From Eutreptiella sp. 'Long Island Sound 2002' (Eukaryota; Protista; Euglenida): 64,000 nt of DNA. The stretch is from assembly GCA_964036045.1 (NCBI GenBank), contig OZ038378.1:188108001-188172000 (forward strand). The letters are read 5' to 3'. This document shows positions 2,808 to 41,397 of this stretch, piece by piece. The translations under genes and the position numbers were made by a program. Numbering within the stretch: the first letter of the stretch is position 1; each line of letters starts with the position of its first letter. The notes beneath the pieces were generated by a model, which was not told the DNA's origin, did not search any database, and saw only the letters and a list, made by a program, of their open reading frames with translations.

Positions 2808-4165
2808 CTGCACAGCGGAGGAGGCAGGCGGCAAATGAGTGGCAAATGAGCCCTGCGACGCTTTGGCCCCGAGCTGTCGAGCAGCTCGACAATTGTACAA
2901 ACAGCTCCGACGAAATTCCAGTGACTGTGAGCACTGGCACATAGTGTCTGTGTCCATATCGGATTGAGCACATTGGCATACGCACCGTCACGCGCGTCAC
3001 CGACATGTCGCGCGCGCAGCACGCGGCGTGACATGCCACGCGCCCATGACACGGTGCGTGACACGATCACGCACGCATTACAAGGCACAAGTAAACGGTG
3101 TTGCTCGAGGCTTTCCGGGAAGGAACACTTTGCGTTTGCAAACTGCAGGACTCCCGCCTGCAGCCGCTTGTCACCGCGTCCAGTCACCGCCACCGCCTCA
3201 CACGTCGCCCGCACAACCGCTGCGCAGCCTCTGAGCTGGGTTTGGGGGTGCACAGATAAACGGTGGTGCTCGAGGCTTCCCGAGAAGGGGGCGTTCGGCC
3301 TGTCACAACACGGGTCGGGGAGAGAGAAATATCCGGGGGAAATGGTATGTCCACGAATTTTGTCGGTATTGACTCAGTCCTGATCCTCAACGATTGCTTG
3401 AATTGTGTGCATTTTCTGGCAAAATTGATTGGCTACGAACACTAGGGACGAGAAGAAGCCGCCGGCACACTGATGGAGGTCTGACCCTCAGGGGCACTAA
3501 CCCCCAGTACACTCTCAAAGCCGCTAAAGGAGCCATTACCCGCCGGTCGGCGCGCTCCAACAGCACACGGCTCACACAAAAATGCCTTCTTTTTACCAAT
3601 AGTACCGCTCAATCACAGGAGCCCCTTTTCCACACCCACCCACCCACCGTTTAGGGGGACTCGAGTGACCTCTGCCCATACCCAAATTGAATTCTTGACC
3701 CGCCCATTCTTCACACAAGGTACTCATCAACACGGGCTCTCCGTTCATCAGCCCCTCAGCCCCGCAGTCCACTACAACGGCGGGCTAGAGCTGTTGCGAT
3801 GGTGGAATGCAGTGCAGGGGATACGCTGCACACATTTCCCGGCACGGGCCCAAATCGATGAAAATGTCACGGTGCCGCTTTGTTCAACCATCCTGACCGT
3901 CGAAAACAACTATGACCGAAACCTGAAAGCGGGGGTAAAAATGGTGTCATGAGGTTTCGGTCAGATTTGCGACAGACCGGTCCGAACCCTGTGCAGTGGG
4001 TGAGAAACACTGGGACTGCCCTGGTAAGGCACGAGTGCAACAGCTGCCCTCTGCCCTCCCTATGCCTTCCTGGCTGTGCCTCCACCTTCTTGATTCCTCA
4101 CTTTGTTGCTTCATCGCCACCGTGTCGGGGCTGTTGTGCCTCGTGTCTTTCCTCCAACGGCAGTA

Positions 4166-4490
4166 CTGTTGTAAGACGGGGCGTCTTAGAAAATCTAAGA
4201 CACATGTAAGACGCATGTAAGACGCATGTAAGACGCATGTAAGACGGATGTAAGACGCATGTAAGACGGATGTAAGACGCATGTAAGACGCCCCGTCTTA
4301 CATAATCTAAGACGGGGCGTCTTAGATTATCTAAGACGCCCCGTCTTAGATAATCTAAGACGCCCCGTCTTAGATTATGTAAGACGCCCCGTCTTAGATA
4401 ATCTAAGACGGGGCGTCTTAGATAATCTAAGACGCCCCGTCTTAGATTTTCTAAGACGCCCCGTCTTAGATTATGTAAGACGGGGCGTCT
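4166..4490. repeat. Left terminal array: terminal hairpin, ~7 x 11-bp ATGTAAGACG(C/G), 9 x 24-bp hairpin units
   Basis: Unit tctaagacg-ccc-cgtcttaga, or its reverse complement with a gggg centre, at 24-bp period from 4281 to 4490. Confidence 0.95.
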
Positions 4491-4734
4491 GGTACTTGGA
4501 ATGTGTATTGCAATGTGTGATGGATTGAACGAATAATATGATAATAATAGAATGAAAAATATGAAAAAGAGAGGTGTGTAGGACGGGGTTGGTCATACAG
4601 ATCTAATACCATGCAAATCCGAAAGATTTGCGTAAATAATTAATTCCCGGCACAAGGTGTTATTGTCCGCAAAAAAAATGTGTAAAAAATTATTTATTGG
4701 CTTCATGCCTTACGCAAAAATGGGTTCCCGGTCC

Positions 4735-4810
4735 CATCGCTCCATCCTATCACTCCATCCCATCACTCCATCCCATCACTCCATCTCACCACTCCATCCC
4801 ATCACTCACT
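4735..4810. repeat. Short tandem repeat (~13-bp ccatcccatcact)
   Basis: About 5 imperfect copies visible. Confidence 0.7.
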
Positions 4811-5609
4811 TCCTTAACCGGGCCCTCTTCTGCGAAGGTGGTTGCAAACAGGGAAGGTTAGGGAAGGTATGCCTGTTTTTCTCTTGTAGGTTTCGTTTGG
4901 TCAGCGCGAAACGTTTCCGAGATCGATATCAGTGATGTAGTGCAGCGAGCGCCAAAATCAGAGAGGAAGTATGAAAACAATCAAAAACGAGGTTGGGTTA
5001 ACAAATTCTCTCCTTTCCAAAACCCGGGCAAGCGACCTGGGGCCTAGCCACAGGGTGGCAGGTGACTGTCTGGCACGATATTGGTTTGTGGTAAGTAGGA
5101 GCTTTGTCTGGACCACTGCGACCTAAATAGACCGCTGTGCTTAAATAGGTGGGATCAGTTACTACCTTTGGGTCAAACAAGATATTGGGTGATTGTAACT
5201 AGGTACGTCTCCCTTCCCAACCCTGGGCGACAGACCTGGGGCCCAGCCACTGGGTGGCGGGTATGCAGACCTACTTGTTTGAAGGATGGATGCACTAGTA
5301 GCACTAGTAAAGATAGGTAGGTGCAGTAGCAATTGTTTCGTTTATTTTCGTTTTCTGCTATTTTGGCGCGGCAATTTTCAGCCTAAGAAGCAAACCAGGG
5401 TTGGCGCCGGAATGGAAACCCGAGGGGTCAACAATGCCTATGGCGGCTCTGGTTTGTTTCTGCAAAACAGCAATCTTTCTTTGCGGCGCTGATGCCGTGA
5501 AGTTAAGACTGCCCCTTAGCGCCCTGCATTGGCTATGCAGGAGCGAATTGTCAAGCCCTGTCGTCAGGTGAGTCTGGTATATGAGGTACTGGTTACCCGG
5601 GGAAACAAA

Positions 5610-5812
5610 ACATTTGTATGCCTGTGTAGGAATGGACTGCAATCCCAAAGTCCAACTCATCCACATTTGTATGCCTGTGTAGGAATGGACTGCAATCCCA
5701 GAGTCCAACTCATCCACATTTGTATGCCTGTGTAGGAATGGACTGCAATCCCAAAGTCCAACTCATCCACATTTGTATGCCTGTGTAGGAATGGACTGCA
5801 ATCCCAGAGTCC
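5610..5812. repeat. 53-bp tandem repeat, ~3.8 copies
   Basis: catttgtatgcctgtgtaggaatggactgcaatccca(a/g)agtccaactcatcc starts at 5611, 5664, 5717 and 5770, with the a/g site alternating. Confidence 0.9.
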
Positions 5813-5849
5813 ATTTTTGGAGGGAAAACAGGCGGATACAAGTGCAATG

Positions 5850-5960
5850 CTTCACCCCCCACTATCTCTGTAGGTCCCCCTGCGAGGGGGGACCTTGTCA
5901 AATTTCCTTCACCCCCCACTATCTCTGCAGGTCCCCCTACGGGGGGGACCTTGTCAGGCA
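5850..5960. repeat. Two copies of a ~57-bp unit with a GC hairpin
   Basis: ttcaccccccactatctctg..aggtccccct-gcg-agggggacct-tgtca occurs twice. Confidence 0.75.
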
Positions 5961-6923
5961 GTTACAGGTCAACATACCCCTTAAGCCCCTCCCCCTTGCT
6001 CTCGACCCCTTCCCCGACCTCCGGTGCCTTTGGCACTAGCCATTCCCAATCAAGGAAACAAACAAAAGTCTGTTAAACACAAGGGGGCCACTGGCAGCAC
6101 CGCTTTCGCAAATTTTATTTTTTCTTTTTTGGGGACTGTCTCTTTCAATGTTAAACTGGTGCTGTCTGATGGCTGGGTGCCTGGGCAGGCAGGTTTCACC
6201 TTCTTGCCCTACAGGGGGGGGAGGAGAGGACGCCCAGGCACCCAAGGGGTCCAAGAGAGCATGGTGGGATATAAAAATAAAAACCTGTAAGTTCCTCTCC
6301 TGCCCTCCCCGCCAGGGCCACCCCCGCCTTGTTTGCCCCCAGCCTTCGGGTTCCACACATTCAGTGACTTTAACAGGTCAGGGATGTTGAAGACTTTAAA
6401 ATTTTTTTGTGGTGTGTATGTGTTACGATTCACATGGTTCATTACTCAGGAATTGCACGCAGCCCCTCCTGTTTTGCACTCTTTTGTGACGGCTTTGTAA
6501 AGGAATTTGTTCGGGAAAACCTCAGCATAGGCCACAGAGGACAGACTCATTGACCTGCAGCACTGTCGAAACCCCCTCTCCCTTGCGGTGTTGTGTTGTG
6601 ACGTTGTGCCAACAGGTGTTCTGTAGAGTTCCAAATTTGTGTGTTGCATGTCAGCATGTATTAGCAAGAAGTATTGACAAGAAGGGTGAAAGGAAGGAAG
6701 AGAATACTTGCAGCAAAGTACATGGATGCAAGCAGTTGTAAAAAGAGATTAGAACAGGAGAAGGGAACAACACCACATAATAGAATGGGATGTTGCTGAT
6801 GTGAAAGTGGACACGGCAAAAGTTATGGTGCAGCCACTGTTGCTGTGCACCCTGCTACAGGGTGCACTTGTGTTGCTTTGTGACGATGTTGTACACTCTT
6901 GCCTTTCATAGCAAACTACTGCA

Positions 6924-7283
6924 TTGATTGAGCCATGCTTGTCCTATGTACAGGAGCTCTATATGTCTGCATTTCAGTGTTGTGAGGGCTGCTTGTGGCC
7001 TTTGGATGCTGCAGGCTGGTGCACAAAGGGGCGATTGCACTGTGCTCCTTGTGGTTGCCCGTTCAAGAATGATGGATCTTGCCCCCGTTGCAACCAAGTA
7101 GTGTGGGACGACAATTTACAATACTACGTTCCACTCTTGCAAGACACACAGGAAGACATGGTGGCGGCAGACGTGTCGGACTCTGGGTCTGACAGTGGGT
7201 GGGATGCCCCATCTCTACAATGGTCACCGACACCACCACCTTCGTTCCATGAGTTTGAGTCTTCCTCGGACTCCGACTTTTGA
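6924..7283 (+). CDS. Small Cys-rich protein with acidic tail (119 aa), cargo of the KDZ element
   Basis: Clustered CCEGC..WC..HCAPCGCP..CPRC motifs followed by a D/S/E-rich tail. ORF only, no homolog recognised. Confidence 0.4.
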   Translation: MIEPCLSYVQELYMSAFQCCEGCLWPLDAAGWCTKGRLHCAPCGCPFKNDGSCPRCNQVVWDDNLQYYVPLLQDTQEDMVAADVSDSGSDSGWDAPSLQWSPTPPPSFHEFESSSDSDF

Positions 7284-7739
7284 GAGGGTCCTGAATGGCG
7301 TTTCCATGAAGACTGGCACACTTTGTGTCGAACACGGTGTTTTTCAACACCACTGCTTGCCCCACTTGGTGGGGCCATTTGAAATTGTGCTGTGTGTCTT
7401 TTCGTAGTTGTTGCACAGGCAATTGATTGACGTTTGGAGGCCTAGGTACTCTACCCCCGGGGGGGGGGGGGTCTGCGTGCTATTTTTTGGGATTTTGGGT
7501 GCCCTCCGGAAACCCCCCCCCTGTTCGGGGCAAAATTTACCACTGTACGGGCCATTGTGCGGGGCGGACCTTTTTTGTTAGAAAACCCTCAGCAGGGGAT
7601 TGCGTAGTGACCCCAATCACCAAAATATGTTCAGAATGTATACCACCAATAAGCCAAATGTTAGCAGAGACATGTCATAGCTAAGTTGGTACATGCGGAT
7701 ACTCATAGGGGTGAAGTCATGGGTTCAATTCCCACCTCT

Positions 7740-8170
7740 GGCACTTTTCTGGCCCTTTTTCTGGCGCTTTTCCTGGCGCTTCTGGCGCTTTTCTGGCGCT
7801 TCTTCTGGAGCTTGTGGCGCTTTCTCTGGCGTTTTTTCAGTATTACAAGTGCACATGACATGCATTGGACACAATCACAAACAACCCGGAACCTTTTCTG
7901 GCGCTGTTTTCTGCGCTTGTGGCGCTTTTGTTGGCGGTTTTTCTGGCACTCCTGGCGCTTTTGTGGCGCTTTTTCTGGAGCTTCTGGCGCTTTCTCTGGC
8001 GGTTTTTCAGTGTTACAAGTGCACATGACATGCATTGGACACAGTCACAAAGAACCCGGAACCTTTTCTGGCGTTGTTTTCTGCGCTTCTGGCGCTTTTT
8101 CTGGCGCTTTTTCTGGCGCTTCTGGGCTTGTGCAGCATTACAAGTGCACATGACATGCATTGGACACATG
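7740..8170. repeat. Composite minisatellite (ctggcgcttt tracts plus caagtgcacatgacatgcattggacac blocks)
   Basis: The block recurs near 7847, 8017 and 8141, separated by variable (t/c)tggcgc runs. Confidence 0.85.
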
Positions 8171-8441
8171 CATTGGATTTCTTTGCTTTGCGCAAGGGTT
8201 TCACTGGTTTCAGTGGTACAGCACGCTGGCAGTAGTAGTGGTGGGCTAATAGTGGATTGGGCCTGTTTTCTCGACATCACCTGTAGGCCTCGAGTGCCCT
8301 GTTACACATTGTTGGCAGCCGTGGGCGGTAGCTGAGTTGTTAGTACATTGTAGTGCACAGGGTAGGATTATTGGATGAATATACCCTTGGAGGCTTGTCA
8401 GTAGCACAAATGTCATTGCCCTTCGTGGAGGTGTTTGGCCC

Positions 8442-11400
8442 ATGGACGAGGAAACCCAGGACTTCGTCCTCGGGTTTCTGGCGAAGCATTTCCATTGCTA
8501 CGTGGAGTTTATCCGTCATGAAGGCCACGACGCCGCTCTAGATATCATTGTGGATGACATTCGTCAATCAAAAAACAGTATGCAATGTGTCCTACCTTGG
8601 CCAATTTGTGTGCCACTTGTTACCTCTGTTTGTATGTTGCATTTTATTAGGTGCTTGTACTACAGCTATGACATCTATGTTCATGAAAGGGAGGGATTGC
8701 ACACATAAATTGTCAGATTTTTCGCTAAGAAAATTGGATTTTGGTCTTTATGCCATCCATGAAAGTCCCCGTGACCACTGTAAGCAGTACCCTAATGGTA
8801 CATATACCTGCATTCAGAGGTGGATGCACAGGTTCGAACCCTGTTGTATACATTCCAGTAATCTAGGGCGAACTAGGTTTGAATCCCAGTTTTTCATGTT
8901 GGCTCACAAAAAATTTGTTTTGGCACCTCTAAAAACCCAGCACACCCGCCCCCCCCTTGGGGGGGGGGGGGGCAGACCCCCCTCCCCCCAAACCCCTTAA
9001 CAGGAACTCCGCCCTTAGGAATCAGCTGCAAATATCTAAAGGCAACCAAGAATGGACAGCATTCATGCAACAGGGGTTAACAACATTTATCCCAAGGCTT
9101 GTAACAAATAGCGATGATCCACTGAGATCCAGGAAATGCACCACCTATCCAGAAAGTTGCTCATGTATGGGTCTGCGGCGCTGTAGGGCAATGGAATAGT
9201 GTGGGGTTGTGGGGCTACTGTGTCAGAGAGTTGTGCACATGCGCACTGTTCTTTGCACTGTCAGTGAACACTTGTCACAGGTTCTCTACCGACAGACAAG
9301 CGTACAGCACGACAGTTGGTGTTGGACACACTGATCCGTGTTTGGCGTAGTGGCGTACCGTTCCTCAGTCCAACATACCAGACAGTGGGCCACGAGTGCA
9401 CCGTTGATGAGGCCGCACCGCCGAAATACCTCCTCCCATGGACCCCGCACTGTGTCAAGTGCCGTGGCGAAGTGCTGCAGCAATATGGGAGGATAAGGTA
9501 CACTGAAGAGTCAGTCACACGGCAGCCCATAGCTCTAATTTCGATGCGCTGCCACCGATGTCTGGCATTGTACGGCTACGATACAGTAACAGTGGGTGAG
9601 GGTGAGGACGAGGAGGTGTACAGGTTGTCACTTCCGAGAGATCACATTGTACTGGCACGCAATGTGTTTGGCCGCCCATATGTCCATGAGTTACAGCAGC
9701 GCATAGTATTGCAGTTTGCAAGCTTCCAGGCAGAGGGTGGTGTCAAGGAAGTACCGCGCACCAAACTCCAAGAGGTTGTTTTCTTGGATTGGTGCACGCG
9801 GTACTACCGTGAGGCGCGAGGGCAGTCCCTTTTTAGGTGCCCAGATTTGCACACTGTTGTCTCAGAGGTGACAGGGTTCCTTCGTCTCAATGGCTTGCCC
9901 AGTAAACATCATCAGTGCTCTGCATGTGAGCCCGCTCATCTCAATCACATTCGCGGTATGCCAACGGTACGCCCAAACATAAAACGACATACAGCAGAGG
10001 TATATGATAGGTGTGTCGTCGTGGATTGCATTTCAAAGGTGTGCAGACGGGTTTGCATGTACGGTATTCGGCAGAATAAGCGTGACCCGGCAACTGGCCT
10101 GCACGTACAAGCACAGTGTAGCAAAGCACCCGTGCCTAGTACGTGCTTCTGTAAAGAACATTCCACCCCTGGGCACGTGGTGTACACACAGGTGCTTGAA
10201 GGTGATGTTGGCAGTGATGTCATGGAGGCATTGCCGGAGGCTTCATCAGGGGACTCTGAGCATGAAACTACAGATGCCTATAGTACTGCACAGGAGGAGG
10301 AAATTGCTGTGTCACGGAGTCCACAGCCCACATTGGACACAGAATACACATCTATGCTCCATGAAATTGCTCTTTCTCATGCTACAGGTGCCCAGTACTC
10401 CAAGCACAACAACACCGCAACGGTCACGGCAACAGCCACCACACACGGCAGCAGGACAGGGGCGGGGAAAGGGTGGTCACCAGGGTGCAAAGCAAAAAAT
10501 GCGCCGCAAGACAGTGTGGTCCGTTTCTGGTCAAGGATGTAAAAAGAAGGTTGTCGTTTTCACTGGGTTCACCAATGGTTTGATGACAGTGTCTCGCCCT
10601 TGTACAGTTGTTGTGCATTTCGACGAGATGGTGGGCGCTGAGGGGTCCCACCAAATTCTGTACAATTTGTGGTCTATCTCGACCCGCCACAAAACAGGTG
10701 GAATTTCTTTTGATTGGATTTTGTTTGATTATGCATGCAGGCTTTCGCAAACATCTGCCAAATACAACGTGCTGTCTGATGTGCAGTGCGTGTTGGACCG
10801 ATTTCATGGTACCGTGCATAAATGTCAAGGGTACGGGATGTCGCAATTCCCAGAGTTGTCGCGCGTCAACAGCTCAGCGGCTGAACAAGGCAACAGTACG
10901 ACAGGTCGCTATAGGTTTGCTGCTAACCCCAGGGACGCGGACACTTTTTATTTTTACATTGCCAACTGCTTGGAGGGCCGCAACAGGTACATCATTGGTG
11001 GCCATAAGGCATCTGCTATAACCGCGTTGGGAGGTTTGCAACCAGTCGAAGGAGTACATGATGATGAAGACCCAACGTCGTGGGTCGTAGATGTTGCACC
11101 ACTTGCAGGCTCTGGCCAATTTTGCACTTTTGTGGCCCGCCTGGCCAAATTGTACCACCTTCGAGCTACGTGGGCTGCAGACCAGTCTTATGTCCCCTTT
11201 AATCCCTTCTCCGCTTTTGCTCATAGGGACAGTGTGAGGAATGTGCCAGCCCTCAAACCGCATACCCATGGTTCTGCGCGTAGTACTTCCAGTACCGTGG
11301 CGCGGACACCTGCCGCATCTGCTGCATCTACCGTTTGCACAACTGCAACATTTGGTAGCCCTGCAGTGACTACATCCAGTGCTACTGCACCATCTGCTGC

Positions 11401-12574
11401 ACCTGTGGTGAATCCCACCTCTGTGCCCATGGAGACCATTTCTGTCAGTAGTGATGATGATATTTTGACAGCCCCAGTGCAGGACCCTGCAGTCCTAGGA
11501 GTGGTGAAGACTGAGCCTGGTGACAATGTCCCTCCTTCCCTGGGCACAGGTGCTTCCGCTGACGTGCCGCAAGACCCCTTTTCCACTGCACAGGACGTGT
11601 CTACATCCCCCCTTGTTGATCCCTATGCACACAGCCCAAGGTTGTCTCCCCATGCATCATTGGATGACATTTCTTTTGGCGAGAATGATGCTTCGATAGC
11701 TGCAATGGAGGACACGGACCCAGAGGTCCTTCGGCATTTCAAGATTGAGCCTGATGTCAATGTCCCTCCTTCCCTGCACACACTTAGTTCAGCACGTGTG
11801 ATGCGCAAACCCTTTTTCACCGACCGGCGCACGTCTGCATCCCCCTCTGCACATCCTTATGCACGTAGCCCAGCATCCTCTCCCCACGTGTCCCCTTCTC
11901 GTTTTGACATCAGCCCTGACGACCCCTCCACTGGTAACGCTTCTGATGGGGCCCCAAGAGTGGTCCGTGCACGTGGCAAAAAAGCCAAGGTTTACAAGAG
12001 TTCCAGTTCACGCCCTTGCACTGTTGTTCAGGCTGCTGCAGGCCCCGATGCGATTTCTTTTGTACATAACTACACTCTGCTTGGAGATGTGGACCGGGGT
12101 CATTTCACGCGAACACAGCAGCCTATTCCTCTACAATCCGGTGTATGGGACTACGCGGCCGAGCCTGAAGCATTTCAGGCCCTCTTGGCCCCACCCTTTG
12201 GCATGCAGGAAGTACACAGTAAGCCCAACATGCTCCAATTGCTGCAGAAGGTGAAAGGGAAACAACTTTTTTCTGTGCGCAGACTATGGTCCACCCTATT
12301 TGCAAATAGGAAGCACCCCCCCTCCATGTCACAATTCAAGGCCATGCTTGTCCATCTCCACCAGGCACATTTGGTACTGCTTGTGATTGTGGGTGCCAGG
12401 GCCAGATCATGCGCATGTCTCATGCTGCCTGCCCCCTGCCCTGCCCCTGCTATTCTTGTTCAGAACAACATTACGGTGGACGAGTGGGATGCACGTTGCT
12501 CTGCAGATTGCTTGTACTCCGTGGCATTTGACCAAAGTTCAGTGCCTAAGCCACCACCTCGGAGGCGGCGGTAA
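8442..12574 (+). CDS. CxC5/CxC6 + KDZ transposase; predicted join(8442..8577,9281..10387,10536..12574), 1093 aa
   Basis: CxC5-like LLPWTPHCVKC..MRCHRCLALYGY; VVVDCISK; CxC6-like QCSKAPVPSTCFCKEH; core TNGLMTVSRPCTVVVHFDEMVGAEG..LFDYAC..LDRFHGTVH..NSSAAEQGN. Two inferred GT-AG introns (8578-9280, 10388-10535) join the three frames with no stops. Confidence 0.8.
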
Positions 12575-12699
12575 ATGAACCATGCCAACTTGGCAACCCC
12601 GAAGCAATGGCAGAACATTTGGCATGGACCGGAAGTCTGTTCGTCAGTGGTGCTTTGCTGCCTTTTTGTGTCTCACACATTAGGGACACGATGCTTGAT

Positions 12700-13230
12700 T
12701 GCCATATGCATCAACGCCCAAACTGCTGCGTTGTTACTCCAAAATGATTTGTTGCAAAATGGGTGCAGAAGTAAACAACAACACCCAGCGCCAACAATCA
12801 TGCCTGGGGGTCTCCCACCTCAGTACCCTAGAGGGCTAATGAGGTTTAACACCCGAAAATGGATGGTAACATGGGACATGCTCAGAGTACAGCTGCTACT
12901 GCCACCATAAGGGAGATGATGCTTCAGTGCCATATGCATCTATGCCCAAACTGCTTGGTTGTTACTCCCTGCAAAATGGGTGCACAATTAAACAACAACA
13001 CCCAGCTGCAACATTTGGGCCTGGGGGTCTCCCACCTCAGTACCCCACAGGGCAAACAAGGCTTAAAATCGGATGGTACCACGGGACAAACTGAGAGTAT
13101 GGCTGCTACTGCCACCATAAGGGAGACGATGCTTCAGTGCCATATGCATCTATGCCCAAACTGCTTCGTTGTTACTCCCAAATGATTTGTTGCAAAATGG
13201 GTGCAGAATCAAACAACAACACCCACCTGC
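12700..13230. repeat. Three imperfect ~200-bp direct repeats downstream of the transposase
   Basis: gccatatgcatc..gcccaaactgct..gttgttactcc..gcaaaatgggtgca recurs near 12701, 12930 and 13139. Confidence 0.7.
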
Positions 13231-13503
13231 AATTGTATTGGTTGGGGTCGGGGGGGGGGGGGGCTCCCAAGGGACTGGTACACAACCTGCTTATGTAGTT
13301 TCTCACCCTGTACAGGTGAAAAAAGCGAAATTTCCGAAACTGATTTTTTTGATATCCCGGCCACTCACAATGACCATCCAAGCTGTGTAAAGCATGTTTT
13401 GAGCAGCATTTAGGTGTTTTCCACCCTATTTGGGGATTGAGTGTGTTTTGGGGGGCATCCCATCTACAGTTTGTAGACACTGTCTGCCCCAAGTGTCTGC
13501 CCC

Positions 13504-15961
13504 AAGTAGACGCGGCCTGCTAATTGTAGACACCGTGGGCATGTTGTAGACGCGAAATGCCAATATTTGGGAAGGGGGCCACGGGCCCCCTTCCCCACCA
13601 AACGGTCCGCTGGCAGCGTTCACCCGCGCACACGGGCATGGTGTTCTGTGGTCTGTAGACACTGTGCACCACAAGTAGACGCGGCCTGCTAATTGTAGAC
13701 ACCGTGCGCATGTTGTAGACGCGAAGTGCCAATATTTGGGAAGGGGGCCGCAGGCCCCCTTCCCCACCAAACGGTCCGGTGGCAGCGTTCACCCGCGCAC
13801 ACGGGCATGGTGTTCTGTGGTCTGTAGACACTGTGCACCACAAGTAGACGCGGCCTGCTAATTGTAGACACCGTGGGCATGTTGTAGACGCGAAATGCCA
13901 ATATTTGGGAAGGGGGCCACGGGCCCCCTTCCCCACCAAACGGTCCGCTGGCAGCGTTCACCCGCGCACACGGGCATGGTGTTCTGTGGTCTGTAGACAC
14001 TGTGCACCACAAGTAGACGCGGCCTGCTAATTGTAGACACCGTGCGCATGTTGTAGACGCGAAGTGCCAATATTTGGGAAGGGGGCCGAAGGCCCCCTTC
14101 CCCACCAAACGGTCCGGTGGCAGCGTTCACCCGCGCACACGGGCATGGTGTTCTGTGGTCTGTAGACACTGTGCACCACAAGTAGACGCGGCCTGCTAAT
14201 TGTAGACACCGTGGGCATGTTGTAGACGCGAAGTGCCAATATTTGGGAAGGGGGCCGCAGGCCCCCTTCCCCACCAAATGGTCCGCTGGCCGCGTTCACC
14301 CGCGCACACGGGCATGGTGTTCTGTGGTCTGTAGACACTGTGCACCACAAGTAGACGCGGCCTGCTAATTGTAGACACCGTGCGCATGTTGTAGACGCGA
14401 AGTGCCAATATTTGGGAAGGGGGCCGAAGGCCCCCTTCCCCACCTAACGGCCCGCTGGCAGCGTTCACCCGCGCACACGGGCATGGTGTTCTGTGGTCTG
14501 TAGACACTGTGCACCACAAGTAGACCCGGCCTGCTAATTGTAGACACCGTGGGCATGTTGTAGACGCGAAGTGCCAATATTTGGGAAGGGGGCCGAAGGC
14601 CCCCTTCCCCACCAAACGGTCCGCTGGCAGCGTTCACCCGCGCACACGGGCATGGTGTTCTGTGGTCTGTAGACACTGTCTGCCCCAAGTAGACGCGGCC
14701 TGCTAATTGTAGACACCGTGGGCATGTTGTAGACGCGAAGTGCCAATATTTGGCCCCCTTCCCCACCAAACGGTCCGGTGGCAGCGTTCACCCGCGCACA
14801 CGGGCATGGTGTTCTGTGGTCTGTAGACGCTGTCTGCCCCAAGTAGACGCGGCCTGCTAATTGTAGATACCGTGGGCATGTTGTAGACGCGAAGTGCCAA
14901 TATTTGGGAAGGGGGCCGAAGGCCCCCTTCCCCACCAAACGGTCCGCTGGCAGCGTTCACCCGCGCACACGGGCATGGTGTTCTGTGGTCTGTAGACACT
15001 GTCTGCCCCAAGTAGACGCGGCCTGCTAATTGTAGACACCGTGGGCATGTTGTAGACGCGAAATGCCAATATTTGGGAAGGGGGCCGCAGGCCCCCTTCC
15101 CCACCTAACGGCCCGCTGGCAGCGTTCACCCGCGCACACGTGCATGGTGTTCTGTGGTCTGTAGACGCTGTCTGCCCCAAGTAGACGCGGCCTGCTAATT
15201 GTAGACACCGTGGGCATGTTGTAGACGCGAAGTGCCAATATTTGGGAAGGGGGCCGCAGGCCCCCTTCCCCACCAAACGGTCCGCTGGCAGCGTTCACCC
15301 GCGCACACGGGCATGGTGTTCTGTGGTCTGTAGACACTGTCTGCCCCAAGTAGACGCGGCCTGCTAATTGTAGACACCGTGGGCATGTTGTAGACGCGAA
15401 GTGCCAATATTTGGCCCCCTTCCCCACCAAACGGTCCGGTGGCAGCGTTCACCCGCGCACACGGGCATGGTGTTCTGTGGTCTGTAGACGCTGTCTGCCC
15501 CAAGTAGACGCGGCCTGCTAATTGTAGACACCGTGGGCATGTTGTAGACGCGAAGTGCCAATATTTGGGAAGGGGGCCGCAGGCCCCCTTCCCCACCTAA
15601 CGGCCCGCTGGCAGCGTTCACCCGCGCACACGTGCATGGTGTTCTGTGGTCTGTAGACGCTGTCTGCCCCAAGTAGACGCGGCCTGCTAATTGTAGACAC
15701 CGTGGGCATGTTGTAGACGCGAAGTGCCAATATTTGGGAAGGGGGCCGCAGGCCCCCTTCCCCACCAAACGGTCCGCTGGCAGCGTTCACCCGCGCACAC
15801 GGGCATGGTGTTCTGTGGTCTGTAGACACTGTCTGCCCCAAGTAGACGCGGCCTGCTAATTGTAGACACCGTGGGCATGTTGTAGACGCGAAGTGCCAAT
15901 ATTTGGGAAGGGGGCCGCAGGCCCCCTTCCCCACCAAACGGTCCGCTGGCAGCGTTCACCC
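13504..15961. repeat. 169-bp satellite, ~14.7 copies, inside the KDZ element
   Basis: Unit starts at 13504, 13673, ... 14687, 14841, ... 15348, 15502, 15671, 15840. Two units are 154-bp deletion variants. Each full unit has a 12-bp-stem hairpin gggaagggggcc-NNN-ggcccccttccc. Confidence 0.95.
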
Positions 15962-16097
15962 GGCGCAGGTAGGGTTTTTGGTAGTTTGTGGTTTGTTTCC
16001 TACATTTGTATTATGTCCTGATCTTGTTCAATCCCATAGCTTTTTGACTGAATAAAACTGCACCTGTACCTACTCTAAGACACCTTGTTCTTATTAA

Positions 16098-16395
16098 TGT
16101 AAGACGCCCCGTCTTAGATAATCTAAGACGCCCCGTCTTAGATTATCTAAGACGCCCCGTCTTAGATTTTCTAAGACGCCCCGTCTTAGATTTTCTAAGA
16201 CGCCCCGTCTTAGATTATCTAAGACGCCCCGTCTTAGATTTTCTAAGACGCCCCGTCTTAGATTTTCTAAGACGGATGTAAGACGCATGTAAGACGCATG
16301 TAAGACGGATGTAAGACGGATGTAAGACGGATGTAAGACGGATGTAAGACGGATGTAAGACGCCTCCAAATCTAAGACGCCCCGTCTTACAACAG
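16098..16395. repeat. Right terminal array: 7 x 24-bp hairpin units, ~8 x 11-bp units, terminal hairpin
   Basis: Same TAAGACG-based units as the left end, with the block order reversed. Confidence 0.95.
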
Positions 16396-16446
16396 CCCTC
16401 CCAACGGCACTACACCGGAGGAGGCACAACCGCAGGAGTCAAATAC

Positions 16447-25317: not shown

Positions 25318-26652
25318 CCCCATTGAGAGAAACAAACGCACCGCGCGCACCGCACATTGCACCGCGCGCTCGTTTTTGGTTGGCGGTTTATGTATTTTTG
25401 GCAGATTTTCAGGGTGGCAGGGATGCGGTGGCTAAGGGGTTAGCGTACATCAACGGAGGCCTCCACTCTACCTCCTCACCAATGTCATGGTGGTTGTAGC
25501 TGACCACACGCCCTGCCCGGGGGGGGGGGGGGTGAGCACAAAGGTGACCTCCTCAGCACGGCCCACACCAAAGAGGGTGCCCGACACGGTGCCCAAGCCT
25601 GTGCAGCATTCGTTTCGACATGTTTCGCGGTTCGAACCTCACGGGGTGCTCATTCCGGTAAGGTGCCCCTCAGTTGAAGTCCTCCTCTCGTTCTCTTCAC
25701 CCTCCTTCTCAGCAGAAGAATAGCACAGGAATAACAAGAAAAGAGAGGTGAGCTGTAGTGCAACGGAGCAAAGGGGTGAAGGTAACCCATCTGAAAAAAA
25801 AAGATTCAGCACCTTGAGTTCTGCGGTGGTGGGCTCACAACTCCACTCCCATCATCGTTTAGGGGCGACGGTCTCCAGGTGTGCCTCCCCTTGCCGAAGG
25901 AGGTCGGTGATCGCAAAAATCTATTGCCTTTGGCAAGGCACCTCGAAGAGGGGAGAGGGACGACCATTTCTGAGCTGCTGAGGCTGGAAAACTGCATAAT
26001 AGCACGTTGTGCCCCAGACCCCCTGGGAGCCCCCCCCCCCCAACACCCAGTGTGAAAATGGCTAAGTCCTCACTGGCAAGGGGCCATATGGGGGGGGGCG
26101 ACTGGGGGTACCTGGAGTTGGGACCCGAGACCCCCGCCATGGGTTAAGGGGGTCCATATACAAGAAAAAAGTTCTAGGACCCAGGTTCAAATACACACAC
26201 AGCAGCCACAATACGCAAAGAAGTTTTGACCCCCCCCCCACCACCCCACCCCACCCCCCCCCTCCAAAAAAGGGGTACCCAAGTGCAGGGGGGGTACGGG
26301 GGTCAAAATCCAAAAAAATCATTGGGGGATCATTTTTGGTCCTAAAAGGATGATTTTACAAGGGGTTAGACGTCAGAAACCATACAATGGGGCATGCTAC
26401 GCGCACGACCCCAAAAAAGGGGGGGTATACGACGCTCGCGCCTGTGCTTGATCTAACAAGCTCTCTTCGAGGTGATTTTTATCCCTCTACCCTCCCACAA
26501 GCTCTACTTATGCTTGTGGGAGACTGGTGTTAACGACAGTGTGACTATATGAAAAAATGGTGTGTTTATAAAACAACGCGCCAAACCGTGTGCACCGTGC
26601 GCACACCGCGCATTGCACCGCGCGCACCGCGCGTTTGTTTCTCTCATTGGGG
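25318..26652. mobile_element. Possible TIR element, ~1.3 kb, non-coding
   Basis: ccccattgagagaaacaaacgc versus gcgtttgtttctctcattgggg (1 mismatch). caccgcgcg arrays near both ends; no TSD seen. Confidence 0.5.
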
Positions 26653-26938
26653 ACGGGCTCAGGTGGTGGCCCTGCCCCTTCCAATCCCATTTTGCCATTC
26701 AAGAGCAGACCGTATTCACGACGACGCAAAGGAACTGACACGGGGGAGGGCGAGCCGGGGGGGTAGCCAGCCCACTGCTTGCCCACAGCAGCCGAGGGGC
26801 TGTTGAGCGCTGTGGGGGGGCTGGGGATGGCCGTGGGGATTGAAAACTGTTGAGGATTGTTGAGTGCCCAGGGGTGTGGGGGGGGTTTGAGGATTGTTGA
26901 GGGTTGTCGACTGAGGGTTGTCGAATGCTCAGACAGAC

Positions 26939-27139
26939 CTGCTGCAGAAGACGACGGCTGCCATTCCAACGCCTGGATGGCGTCTGTATGCCCATTGAGA
27001 GGGCACTCGGCGTCAGGGTCCTCAAAAGACTGGAGCTGCCACACCACGAGCTTTGAGGTCTGGTACCCCACCGCGACACGCGTTCCATCAGGGGAGACTG
27101 CAATGGCGCTGACGCTGACGGCCGGGGAAACTGCTTGTC
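26939..27139 (-). CDS. GEMIN5: Gemin5-like exon 5
   Basis: Reads QAVSPAVSVSAIAVSPDGTRVAVGYQTSKLVVWQLQSFEDPDAECPLNGHTDAIQALEWQPSSSAA, similar to LVAIGYKDG..RLRGHDDEIHSIAWCP. Phase 1 to 1; an alternative in-phase acceptor would start the exon at 27130. Confidence 0.88.
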
Positions 27140-27242
27140 CTAACGACGATGCACAGTATAGTGCGCGCACGCTCGCACACGCACACGACAAGCAGCGCCC
27201 ACATGATGCCCAGCAGCAGATCAACAGCCAGAGAAACAGATA

Positions 27243-27635
27243 CCCCCCCCCCCTTGTATAAGCTACGCCAAAGTCCCAAATTAATACGGTCCCTACGCCT
27301 ACTGTAGCTTGGACACGGGCGTAGCTTGCGCGCAACACATACAACTACTGACACCGGGCGCCCAGGTTCAAAAAGAGAGGATTGCATGGTGCCGGTTCAA
27401 GAAAGGGGCATATAATGCACAAACATCCCCAAAATCAGAGCTATGTGGGTTCAAGTGGCAAACACTCACAACAAATGTGTCCATGACTCTATGTGACTCG
27501 CAAATCCGTCACCAAACCCATGTTTTATGTGGCTGCACTACGTTTGGTACCGAATTAAAATTAGGTCCCAAATTAATACGGTCCCTACGCCTACTGTAGC
27601 TTGGACAAGGGCGTAGCTTATACAAGGGGGGGGGG
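27243..27635. mobile_element. MITE with TA target duplication (Tc1/mariner-like)
   Basis: TA|C11-ttgtatagctacgcc ... ggcgtagcttatacaa-G10|TA. A ~55-bp block (gtcccaaattaatacggtccctacgcc...) is duplicated internally. Confidence 0.7.
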
Positions 27636-39714: not shown

Positions 39715-40925
39715 GCAGCTTGAGCTCGGCATGCGCGTTTCGGCCACGAGCTAGACCCACAAGTTCGAGAACACCAGTAGGGTCTCGGTCCCCGGCCTTA
39801 TCAAGTGGACCACCACCGACACCGTAAGCCCCTGGGCCGCCCTCCAACACAACCCGTGGGCCCAGGACGGCCAGCGAGGGCCGTACGTGGGTTTGGCCAG
39901 TGGACCCCAAGTAGTCCACATCGTCGTCAGGGTGGGCCTGAGGGCCAACATGGAAACACGCAGGTTCGGCGCTAGGTGCAGCAGCGTGCTCGTCCAACAG
40001 CCCAGGGGTGAAGGTGCACAACACGGTCCCGCGAGTGTGGTTGGCCGCAATCTCATGGGTATCATGGGCCGTCTTTGGCTCGCGGTCGCGTTTGAAGGTC
40101 TTGGGATCAGCAGCCAACTCGGCGTCGTCCCAACCGTCGTGGGGTACCAACCACTGCAAGTGGTCGAGCCTGACCTCCATCACCTTCAACCCAGCGGGAG
40201 TGCTAGGCCCCGTCGGCAAGCGCGTCGGCGGCGTGGGAGGCCCAGACCCCAACATGCCCCTCGTCGTCCACCTTGCTCCGCACGTAGTGGCTGGGCATGG
40301 AGGTCAAAAGCAAACGGCGGTCAGTAATCACCACAACCTGCAGGCGGTCGTCGAACACGCAACATACAGCCATGCAGCCGTTCTTGACCGCCTGCACACG
40401 TAGCCCCACGAGTTGGTCATGAGGGCTGAGGGCTTCTCCAAGGTGGGGCAGACAACAGGCCCCCATAGTACCCATCAGGACATCTTGGCAGGCCTTGCTG
40501 GCATTCACGTACTGGGCGCGCACGAGGCTGGAGCTGCCAAAGTGGTTCAGACTACCCCCAGAGAAGTTCCGAGCACCACTTTGGAACCACGCAGGCTCCG
40601 TGCTAGTCCCACCAGTGTGCTGGGCCAACAGCTTCATGATCAAGTAGCCCACAGTACCCAATATAGCCCAACCGGCGTGTGTGACTTTGGCCTCGTGGTG
40701 ACTCTTGGAGTTCTTGGGGTCGGCAGCCAAATCATCGTTTGTCCAACCGTAGCAAGGCCCCAACCACTGCAAGCGGTCGAATCTTATCCCCATGCCCTTC
40801 AGCTTAGCGGGGGCGCCCGGACTAGGACCAGGGCCAGGACTTGCAACCACGGGATGGGCGCGCATCAAGCTGGAGCTGCAAGAGTGGTTTGGACCGCCCC
40901 CAGGCAAGTTTCGAGCGCCAGCTTG
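39715..40925 (-). pseudogene. Lhcb: Tandem degenerate LHCII (chlorophyll a/b-binding) pieces: two near-complete units plus one fragment
   Basis: YGWTNDDLAADPKNSKSHHEAKVTHAGWAILG..AWFQSGARNFSGGSLNHFGSSSLVRAQ..KNGCMA (~40330-40800); GWDDAELAADPKTFKRDRE..GGGPL..HAELKLQ (~39715-40195); GARNLPGGGPNH fragment (~40860-40925). No introns seen. Confidence 0.8.
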
Positions 40926-41397
40926 TGCAATGCCACTGACGGCTGGCTCCTGCCCAATCACATTCTCATGCAGGCGCTCCTTCAGATGCAGCAGCAAAGA
41001 GCTTCGGCCGCCGATGACCTTCTCCACAGGGGTGCCAGTCCACCGCGCCACGATGCCTGCAATGTGCTCTGCGGTGACAACCACGTCGCCGTGACTGGCC
41101 TAGGCAGCCACTGGACCAACAGGTTTGTCGCCCGTCATGCCTTGGAGCTTGTCCTCAATCTCCTGAATTTGGGCGCGCACGACCACAAGTTGCTCGAATT
41201 CACGGGAGTGCGATTGGTCAGCCTTCACTTGCTTCAGCGTGCACACCTGCTTCTACAGCTTTTGCACCTCCAAGGACTCTGCCACGCGTTGACACGAACC
41301 GGCCTTCTCCAGCAAGTCATTGGCTTTATCCAGAAGGAAGCGGTCATTGATGTACTGCGCCGACAGCTTTGTTGTTGCCTCCACGGCCTCATGCGTG
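40925..41397 (-). pseudogene. clpC: ClpC-type Hsp100 fragment (end of AAA-1, short M domain, start of AAA-2)
   Basis: [33 protein letters not shown]...VVTAEHIAGIVARWTGTPVEKV..LLLHLKERLHENVIGQEPAV. Two in-frame stops. The short middle domain favours ClpC over ClpB. Confidence 0.8.

Follow-up and report, generated by a model that had tools for sequence, protein, structure and literature searches.

The 64,000-nucleotide stretch of the genome of Eutreptiella sp. 'Long Island Sound 2002' analysed here (contig OZ038378.1, positions 188,108,001 to 188,172,000; hereafter the window) carries near its left end a copy of a DNA transposon that belongs to a young cut-and-paste family. Its enzyme is very probably a highly divergent KDZ (Kyakuja-Dileera-Zisupton) transposase from the branch with an N-terminal CxC5-type zinc cluster. 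The comparison of this copy with four full-length relatives revealed that the family is young and recently multiplied, with at least four genes that keep open frames, whereas the copy in the window, having intact ends but a broken transposase gene, is a decayed family member. A previous interpretation of the same DNA made from its letters only (the sequence-only reading) had already described an apparently intact KDZ element at this place. In this regard, the new points of the present analysis are the five-base extensions outside the terminal inverted repeats (TIRs), the broken state of the window copy, the indirect route that leads to KDZ membership, and the existence of non-coding modules held in common by two transposon families.

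Ends of the element and target site duplication

The limits of the transposon were set by the comparison of five independent insertions, which are the window copy and four full-length loci (L001 to L004) of one ENA assembly, ERZ25074135, the first of which aligns with the window element over its full length at about 98% identity (L001:4879-17127). The perfect 25-bp TIRs of the sequence-only reading were confirmed in both sequence and position, with CTGTTGTAAGACGGGGCGTCTTAGA at the left side and its reverse complement at the right. When the TIR 24-mer was searched with up to three mismatches allowed, just two sites appeared in the 64-kb window, both of them at the element ends, against a chance expectation of 0.00 matches in dinucleotide-preserving shuffles. 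The element had been placed at 4166-16395, that is, from TIR to TIR, but its true ends are 4161 and 16400, as five extra element bases lie beyond each TIR: CAGTA at the left, which is found in four of the five copies (L004 has TAGTA), and CCCTC at the right, which is identical in all five. Left and right extensions are mutually non-complementary, and the TIR lies five bases inside each end. The end sequence of the element can be written as CAGTACTGTTGTAAGACG, with its partner at the other end.

Directly beyond the five-base extensions, the window copy is flanked by a 7-bp target site duplication (TSD), and the same holds for the rest of the copies, since a perfect and copy-specific 7-bp TSD was found in five out of five. 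No obvious target preference was seen among these five sequences. The features at the borders of the element are the following:

4154..4160 (no strand): left copy of the TSD, CCAACGG, identical to 16401-16407
4161..16400 (+): whole transposon copy, 12,240 bp, delimited by the alignment with L001 and the shared ends of the five insertions
4161..4165 (+): left terminal extension CAGTA, outside the TIR
4166..4190 (+): left 25-bp TIR, containing the small palindrome TAAGACG-GGG-CGTCTTA
16371..16395 (-): right 25-bp TIR
16396..16400 (+): right terminal extension CCCTC, the same in all five copies
16401..16407 (no strand): right copy of the TSD, CCAACGG

The TSDs of the five copies read as follows:

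Window copy: CCAACGG
L001: GCTTTTT
L002: GTGAATC
L003: CCGCCTG
L004: CCCCAGT

Heptamer arrays at both ends

A second hallmark of the ends is the heptamer TAAGACG, which occurs 51 times in the window and always within the terminal ~340 bp at each end of the element (26 occurrences fall in 4161-4500 and 25 in 16060-16400, with none elsewhere in the 64 kb). Three layouts of this word can be distinguished, which are the small palindrome within each TIR, an array with a period of 11 bp and an array of 24-bp palindromic units:

4196..4291 (+): left array of 8.7 units of 11 bp (TAAGACGCATG)
4284..4482 (no strand): left array of 8.3 palindromic units of 24 bp (TAAGACGCCCCGTCTTAGATAATC)
16100..16274 (no strand): right array of 7.3 palindromic units of 24 bp
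16268..16362 (+): right array of 8.6 units of 11 bp (TAAGACGGATG)

In both 11-bp arrays TAAGACG reads on the forward strand, so that these arrays are direct and not inverted with respect to each other. The element is therefore polar, and the mirror symmetry of its two ends does not extend past the outer 25 bp.

A young family of copies

All the proteins found by a word-based search to be 96-98% identical to the window protein come from the same assembly, ERZ25074135, as do the 26 members of its 90% protein cluster. Five of the 15 listed cluster members approach the full length, and the remaining ones, about two thirds, are pieces. The four loci compared with the window copy keep an uninterrupted open reading frame (ORF) of 1082, 1082, 1086 and 1063 codons, respectively, and the DNA identity among the five ORFs reaches 99.1-99.5%. 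The sequence-only reading had pointed to the joint presence of the TIRs and this ORF elsewhere as a check of the element, and the TIRs indeed flank the same ORF at all four other loci examined. Altogether, the identity of the ORFs, the perfect TSDs and the at least four intact ORFs indicate that the family is recent. An exact search for the TIR in the JGI metagenome contigs gave no match.

Lesions in the window copy

In the window, the transposase gene is split into two overlapping forward frames, 9316-10542 and 10004-12574, and its alignment with the four sister ORFs revealed two private lesions. The first one affects the start of the gene, where ACA in the window copy takes the place of the first ATG that opens the ORF in all four sisters. 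The second is a 2-bp deletion after position 10391 accompanied by two neighbouring substitutions, GGTGC--CCAGTACTCC in the window versus GGTGCCACCTGCACTCC, all of which fall within 8 bases. As a result of the deletion, most of the catalytic core lies out of frame with the N-terminal clusters:

9328..9330 (+): ACA replacing the ATG of the sister copies (alignment of five ORFs)
10391..10392 (+): site of the private, frame-shifting 2-bp deletion (alignment of five ORFs)

These observations do not agree with the apparently intact element described from the sequence alone. The same reading had considered a possibly recent or active element, of which the recent origin stands for the family, in view of the ORF identity and the perfect TSDs, and the activity does not stand for this copy, given its frameshifted ORF. 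It is very improbable that the window copy is itself autonomous and active, with a frameshift that either was introduced during assembly or is overcome through an intron or frameshifting, although its ends, repeat arrays and TSD are perfect and it differs by less than 1% from its sisters. Small indel errors do occur in long-read assemblies, and the possibility that the 2-bp deletion could be one of them has to be counted against the idea of a broken gene. Nevertheless, the complexity of this lesion, with its two adjacent substitutions, and the independent loss of the ATG both speak against an assembly error, in four sister copies the frame stays open across this position and is not interrupted by an intron, and broken copies are common in the family, as attested by the short pieces among the listed cluster members (about two thirds of them). 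Taking the window copy as a decayed one, its mobility would require transposase provided in trans by intact sister copies.

A spliced gene model was also considered and rejected, because the sister copies have one continuous ORF and no intron is needed. The spliced protein put forward in the sequence-only reading is in this way replaced by a single frame of 1063-1086 amino acids.

Sequence evidence for a KDZ transposase

A natural intact paralogue about 98% identical to the window protein (P0001) was employed as its stand-in, and the following parts of the protein can be located in the window:

9328..10391 (+): N-terminal part of the transposase, with the CxC5-like cluster (~9421-9732), another Cys/His cluster and the strand that bears D233
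10024-10026 (+): D233, first candidate catalytic Asp
10392..12574 (+): remainder of the transposase in the shifted frame, with the KDZ core at ~10520-11000
10727-10729 (+): D468
10796-10807 (+): DRFH
10817-10819 (+): H498
10823-10825 (+): C500
10883-10885 (+): E520

All the motifs previously listed for this gene (VVD, FDYAC, DRFHxxxH and NSSAAEQ) were found in forward-strand frames of the window, where they read VVVD, FDYAC, DRFHGTVH and NSSAAEQ. On the 3′ side of the KDZ core, the ORF continues with a Ser/Thr/Pro-rich region and then with a C-terminal region that is common to a sister family described below.

The relationship with KDZ enzymes emerges from the relatives of the protein. A phmmer search with residues 1-620 of P0001 against 1.84 billion representatives gave 46 matches at E ≤0.001. 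Six of those matching in the catalytic region (P0052, P0055, P0057, P0058, P0060 and P0061; phmmer E 9e-5 to 5e-4) exceed the cut-off of the KDZ model of Pfam (PF18758, 26.6 bits), with scores of 34.7-54.2 bits. At the N-terminal side, P0024 matches residues 32-280 with 31% identity (phmmer E 6e-22) and holds, in the aligned part, a CxC5 domain of 38.4 bits (cut-off 26.9), and P0043, another N-terminal match, is also above the CxC5 cut-off with 27.4 bits. The N-terminal CxC-type cluster that characterizes KDZ proteins is thereby found through P0024 and P0043, and not as a direct match of the protein itself. Taking 42 relatives together, the Pfam families detected at E ≤0.01 were KDZ (6), CxC5 (3), CxC4 (1) and two stray ones, whereas CxC6 (PF18721) gave no match in any of the 42. 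Two metagenome contigs (L007 and L008) show a CxC5 ORF followed by a KDZ ORF on the same strand. Moreover, when the profile of the Pfam-negative family members was aligned by hhalign with the profile of the KDZ-positive proteins, a probability of 99.9% and an E-value of 1.3e-31 were obtained over 145 columns.

A close-up view of these alignments shows D233 within a conserved block, VxVxDGHEKxxRxVCQ, whereas D468 (in YDxxC), the D491-R-F-H494 motif, H498, C500 and E520 (in INSxxxEQ) show little or no variation among the members of the family and the KDZ-positive proteins. The residues D233, D468 and E520 are the candidate catalytic triad, in which D468 and E520 flank the DRFHxxxHxC motif.

No other ORF in the element gave a family match, and no TET/JBP gene was found among them. 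Consequently, the candidates of a second gene or of a TET/JBP cargo were rejected.

Predicted fold of the transposase

An AlphaFold model of residues 1-620 of P0001, calculated with a 42-row alignment, reached a predicted template modelling score (pTM) of 0.73, with confident regions at residues 30-283 and 388-571 and a disordered insert of ~100 residues (284-387) between them. The modelled fold is that of a DDE transposase with RNase H-like architecture, where D233 is found on a strand, D468 just after a strand and E520 on a helix, in the order expected for RNase H-like enzymes. In the comparison with solved structures by VIA-align, which does not depend on Foldseek and matched residues 221-573, the ISCth4 transposase was at the top (Z 10.4, 264 residues), followed by Tn5 (Z 8.8), by retroviral and Mu-type enzymes (Z 6-7, with integrases at about 7), and by further matches including TnsB, IstA, RAG1, piggyBac, the P element and Hermes.

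Among predicted structures, the top match was a cluster of CxC5/KDZ/CxC6 proteins, with template modelling (TM) scores of 0.57/0.63 over 410 residues, and the second one a basidiomycete CxC6/CxC5 cluster with TM 0.54/0.60, whereas KDZ clusters with CxC2/3/4 scored lower (TM 0.44-0.46). Among the nearest predicted-structure clusters, CxC6 is present in 24% and 97% of the members. The same CxC5/KDZ/CxC6 cluster was also the first one in a comparison of language-model features (0.96, with 214/256 shared).

A side observation concerns the basidiomycete CxC5/CxC6 cluster, which lacks Pfam KDZ matches and aligns in shape with residues 40-592 of the model. In Pleurotus ostreatus, a CxC5/CxC6 ORF of 660-739 amino acids is carried by the 6.8-kb insert of MSH4, which was linked to Copia elements (PMC7641404). 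Judging from the model, CxC5/CxC6 ORFs like this one may be complete, divergent KDZ transposases themselves.

Weight of the KDZ assignment

Several results weigh against the assignment of the enzyme to KDZ. Pfam gave no match, even at E=10, for the window ORFs, their sub-pieces, P0001 or the second paralogue P0002, and the 39% identical protein of the sister family (P0019) reaches KDZ only at E 0.06 with 13.5 bits, for a PF18758 cut-off of 26.6. With no direct Pfam match, KDZ membership depends on transitive and profile-profile evidence. Word-based protein searches, queried with either the protein alone or the alignment of 42 sequences, retrieved only the own copies of the family. No solved structure was below E 0.09 in Foldseek, in a weak list formed mostly by transposases and integrases, and the structure searches did not retrieve any KDZ structure, so that the fold as such speaks for a DDE transposase only. 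Furthermore, the binding of the heptamers, the places of cleavage and the catalytic triad are inferred. On balance, the KDZ identity advanced by the sequence-only reading is sustained through the relatives, the hhalign comparison, the predicted fold and the nearest predicted structures, and not through the direct check with CxC5, CxC6 and KDZ profiles.

If the likeness to KDZ was just a distant resemblance, the enzyme would belong to another DDE superfamily with a [C/D]xxH motif (Mutator/MULE, hAT, P or CACTA/CMC), which we regard as extremely improbable. Such a possibility can invoke the lack of a direct Pfam KDZ match, the P-element, hAT and RAG1 structures aligned at Z 4.7-6.1, and the fact that the best solved-structure match is ISCth4, which we take to be an IS256-family enzyme and a bacterial kin of Mutator. 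However, the family-level matches of the 42 relatives are all to KDZ or to KDZ-associated CxC domains, with a sub-threshold ISL3 as the sole transposase exception, the hhalign comparison with KDZ-positive proteins is as strong as E 1.3e-31, and both the nearest feature clusters and the best shape clusters are KDZ or CxC. There was no match either to hAT dimerisation, MULE or THAP domains. At the level of the DNA, a 7-bp TSD is known in some hAT and P elements (hAT7: PMC12730594), but the termini CAGTA...CCCTC are not CACTA and the TSD is 7 bp and not 2-4 bp. A very divergent KDZ enzyme is then the preferred interpretation, which implies that the Pfam KDZ model misses the present branch and that the number of KDZ elements in protist genomes is probably underestimated.

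A sister family with shared non-coding modules

A second KDZ family was found in the same assembly, with a complete copy (L005:7930-15386) encoding the 1069-amino acid ORF P0019, which is 39% identical to the enzyme of the window family. Its ends follow the same design with another heptamer, GTACGAC, which is repeated 43 and 34 times at the two ends in arrays with a 10-bp period and in CGACGCGTCG palindromes. The termini of this element read CACTA-CTGTCG... and ...CGACAG-CACTC, and its flanking repeat, TCCCAGC, is compatible with the pattern of five bases plus a 7-bp TSD. The TSD of this family is probably 7 bp, although in this single copy it can also be read as 10 bp.

Despite their distant proteins, both families have two non-coding modules in common, which together with a third repeat are located in the window as follows:

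5932..6425 (no strand): non-coding segment of ~500 bp, 84% identical in DNA to L005:9019-9491, upstream of the sister ORF
12753..13179 (no strand): 210-bp tandem repeat of two units, downstream of the ORF
13494..15967 (+): internal satellite, 14.8 units of 169 bp, with ~4 copies of the word GTAGAC(G/A) per unit, all in the same orientation, plus a G+C-rich palindrome

The internal satellite is 85-89% identical in DNA to a 168-bp satellite that occupies the same position in the sister family (L005:13768-14782). Its word GTAGAC(G/A) is one base shorter than the end word of either family (TGTAAGACG, TGTACGAC). The five copies of the window family contain 15, 15, 7, 4 and 7 satellite units, which explains the length differences among them, and no satellite was found outside elements in the DNA compared. 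As for the segment at 5932-6425, its similarity to the sister family is equal in all reading frames and it is therefore non-coding.

Since the proteins are just 39% identical and the modules 84-89%, both modules have been either constrained or exchanged between families. The ~500-bp segment may correspond to a promoter or leader common to both families, or else to an exchanged module. A wider proposal, which we consider rather unlikely, is that the satellite and the ~500-bp segment are functional parts of the transposon that have been kept or exchanged, in which case the satellite could be an internal array of binding sites acting as a decoy, as an enhancer or as a regulator of transposition.

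Proposed architecture and mechanism

The intact sister copies carry a single, intronless gene for a protein of ~1082 amino acids. Its N-terminus holds a CxC5-like domain, and it further comprises a second Cys/His cluster and a catalytic domain of the RNase H-like type, which is predicted to be split by a disordered insert of ~100 residues. In the mechanism suggested by this architecture, the N-terminal zinc clusters would recognise a family-specific heptamer, which is TAAGACG in the present case, and the heptamer arrays would load many transposase molecules. The 25-bp TIRs would then pair both ends and position the cleavage five bases further out, and reinsertion through target cuts with a 7-bp stagger would give rise to the 7-bp TSD.

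Surroundings of the element and significance

No recognisable host exons were found among the ORFs examined in the flanks of the element. Farther away, an ORF at 26508-27344 on the reverse strand resembles WD40 proteins, with weak beta-propeller matches, and is probably an exon of a host gene. Another one at 40203-41084, also on the reverse strand, resembles the chlorophyll a/b-binding proteins of light-harvesting complexes (LHC), and its best match among solved structures is a 620-residue LHCI chain, 9vfj_2, in keeping with an alga that uses chlorophylls a and b. Rfam and tRNA scans of the window gave no match.

A literature search found no report joining euglenids with KDZ or Zisupton elements. 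Under the interpretation proposed here, KDZ transposons, so far known mainly from fungi and fish, would be extended to a euglenid lineage. Moreover, the family is fully delimited, as its exact ends and 7-bp TSD are known, at least four of its genes are intact and a sister family uses another end word, which makes it a workable system for the study of end recognition by KDZ enzymes.

Position within KDZ and comparison with known elements

The evidence favours the CxC5-bearing branch of KDZ. The CxC5/CxC6 branch reportedly received the name of Dileera from Iyer et al. in 2014, and the label Dileera-like given by the sequence-only reading is plausible, as it agrees with the CxC5 domain detected via the relatives, and it does so in part only, since CxC6 was undetected by any profile and the length of the TSD differs. 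On this last point, a TSD of 8 bp was described by Kojima in 2025 for both Dileera (Zisupton-1_PGr) and Zisupton elements (PMC12730594), whereas the five copies of the window family all have 7 bp. Dileera-type elements, represented by Zisupton-1_PGr of Puccinia graminis and by the CxC5/CxC6 proteins of basidiomycetes and rotifers, are like the window family in being large, in having TIRs and in coding for a single large transposase with a CxC5-type N-terminal cluster (via P0024 and P0043), and the nearest clusters by structure and features are of CxC5, CxC6 and KDZ proteins. On the other hand, the window element lacks a TET/JBP gene or any recognisable cargo, and its host is a euglenid and not a fungus.

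Kyakuja elements (Kyakuja-1_LB and Kyakuja-2_LB of Agaricomycetes) belong to the same superfamily and were described in the same work as having a 7-bp TSD, CA..TG termini and no inverted repeats (PMC12730594). In this line, the window element has both the 7-bp TSD and the 5′-CA start, and the sister family also starts with CA and is compatible, in its one copy, with the 7-bp pattern. That the element is placed in the Kyakuja branch instead of the Dileera-like one is still unlikely, because it ends in TC and possesses 25-bp TIRs, the relatives that pass the Pfam cut-offs carry CxC5 and not CxC1/2/3, and the predicted-structure clusters of KDZ with CxC2/CxC3 reach a TM of 0.44 versus 0.54-0.57 for those with CxC5/CxC6. 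The fungal members of Kyakuja differ as well in having other cysteine clusters, such as CxC2 in Pleurotus (PMC7641404), and in the TET/JBP gene that they often carry.

A further comparison is possible with KDZ1-KDZ3 of Cryptococcus neoformans, for which transposition has been observed experimentally. These elements have a similar size class (9-11 kb), a single KDZ transposase and inverted-repeat ends, and they insert into introns and exons (PMC12810828). They differ from the window element in their CxC1 cluster, in their TSD of 8 bp for KDZ1 and of 4-8 bp for KDZ2 and KDZ3, and in their TIRs of 139-241 bp (PMC12810828), whereas the exact TIR of the window element comprises only 25 bp, lies five bases inside the end and is followed by the heptamer arrays.

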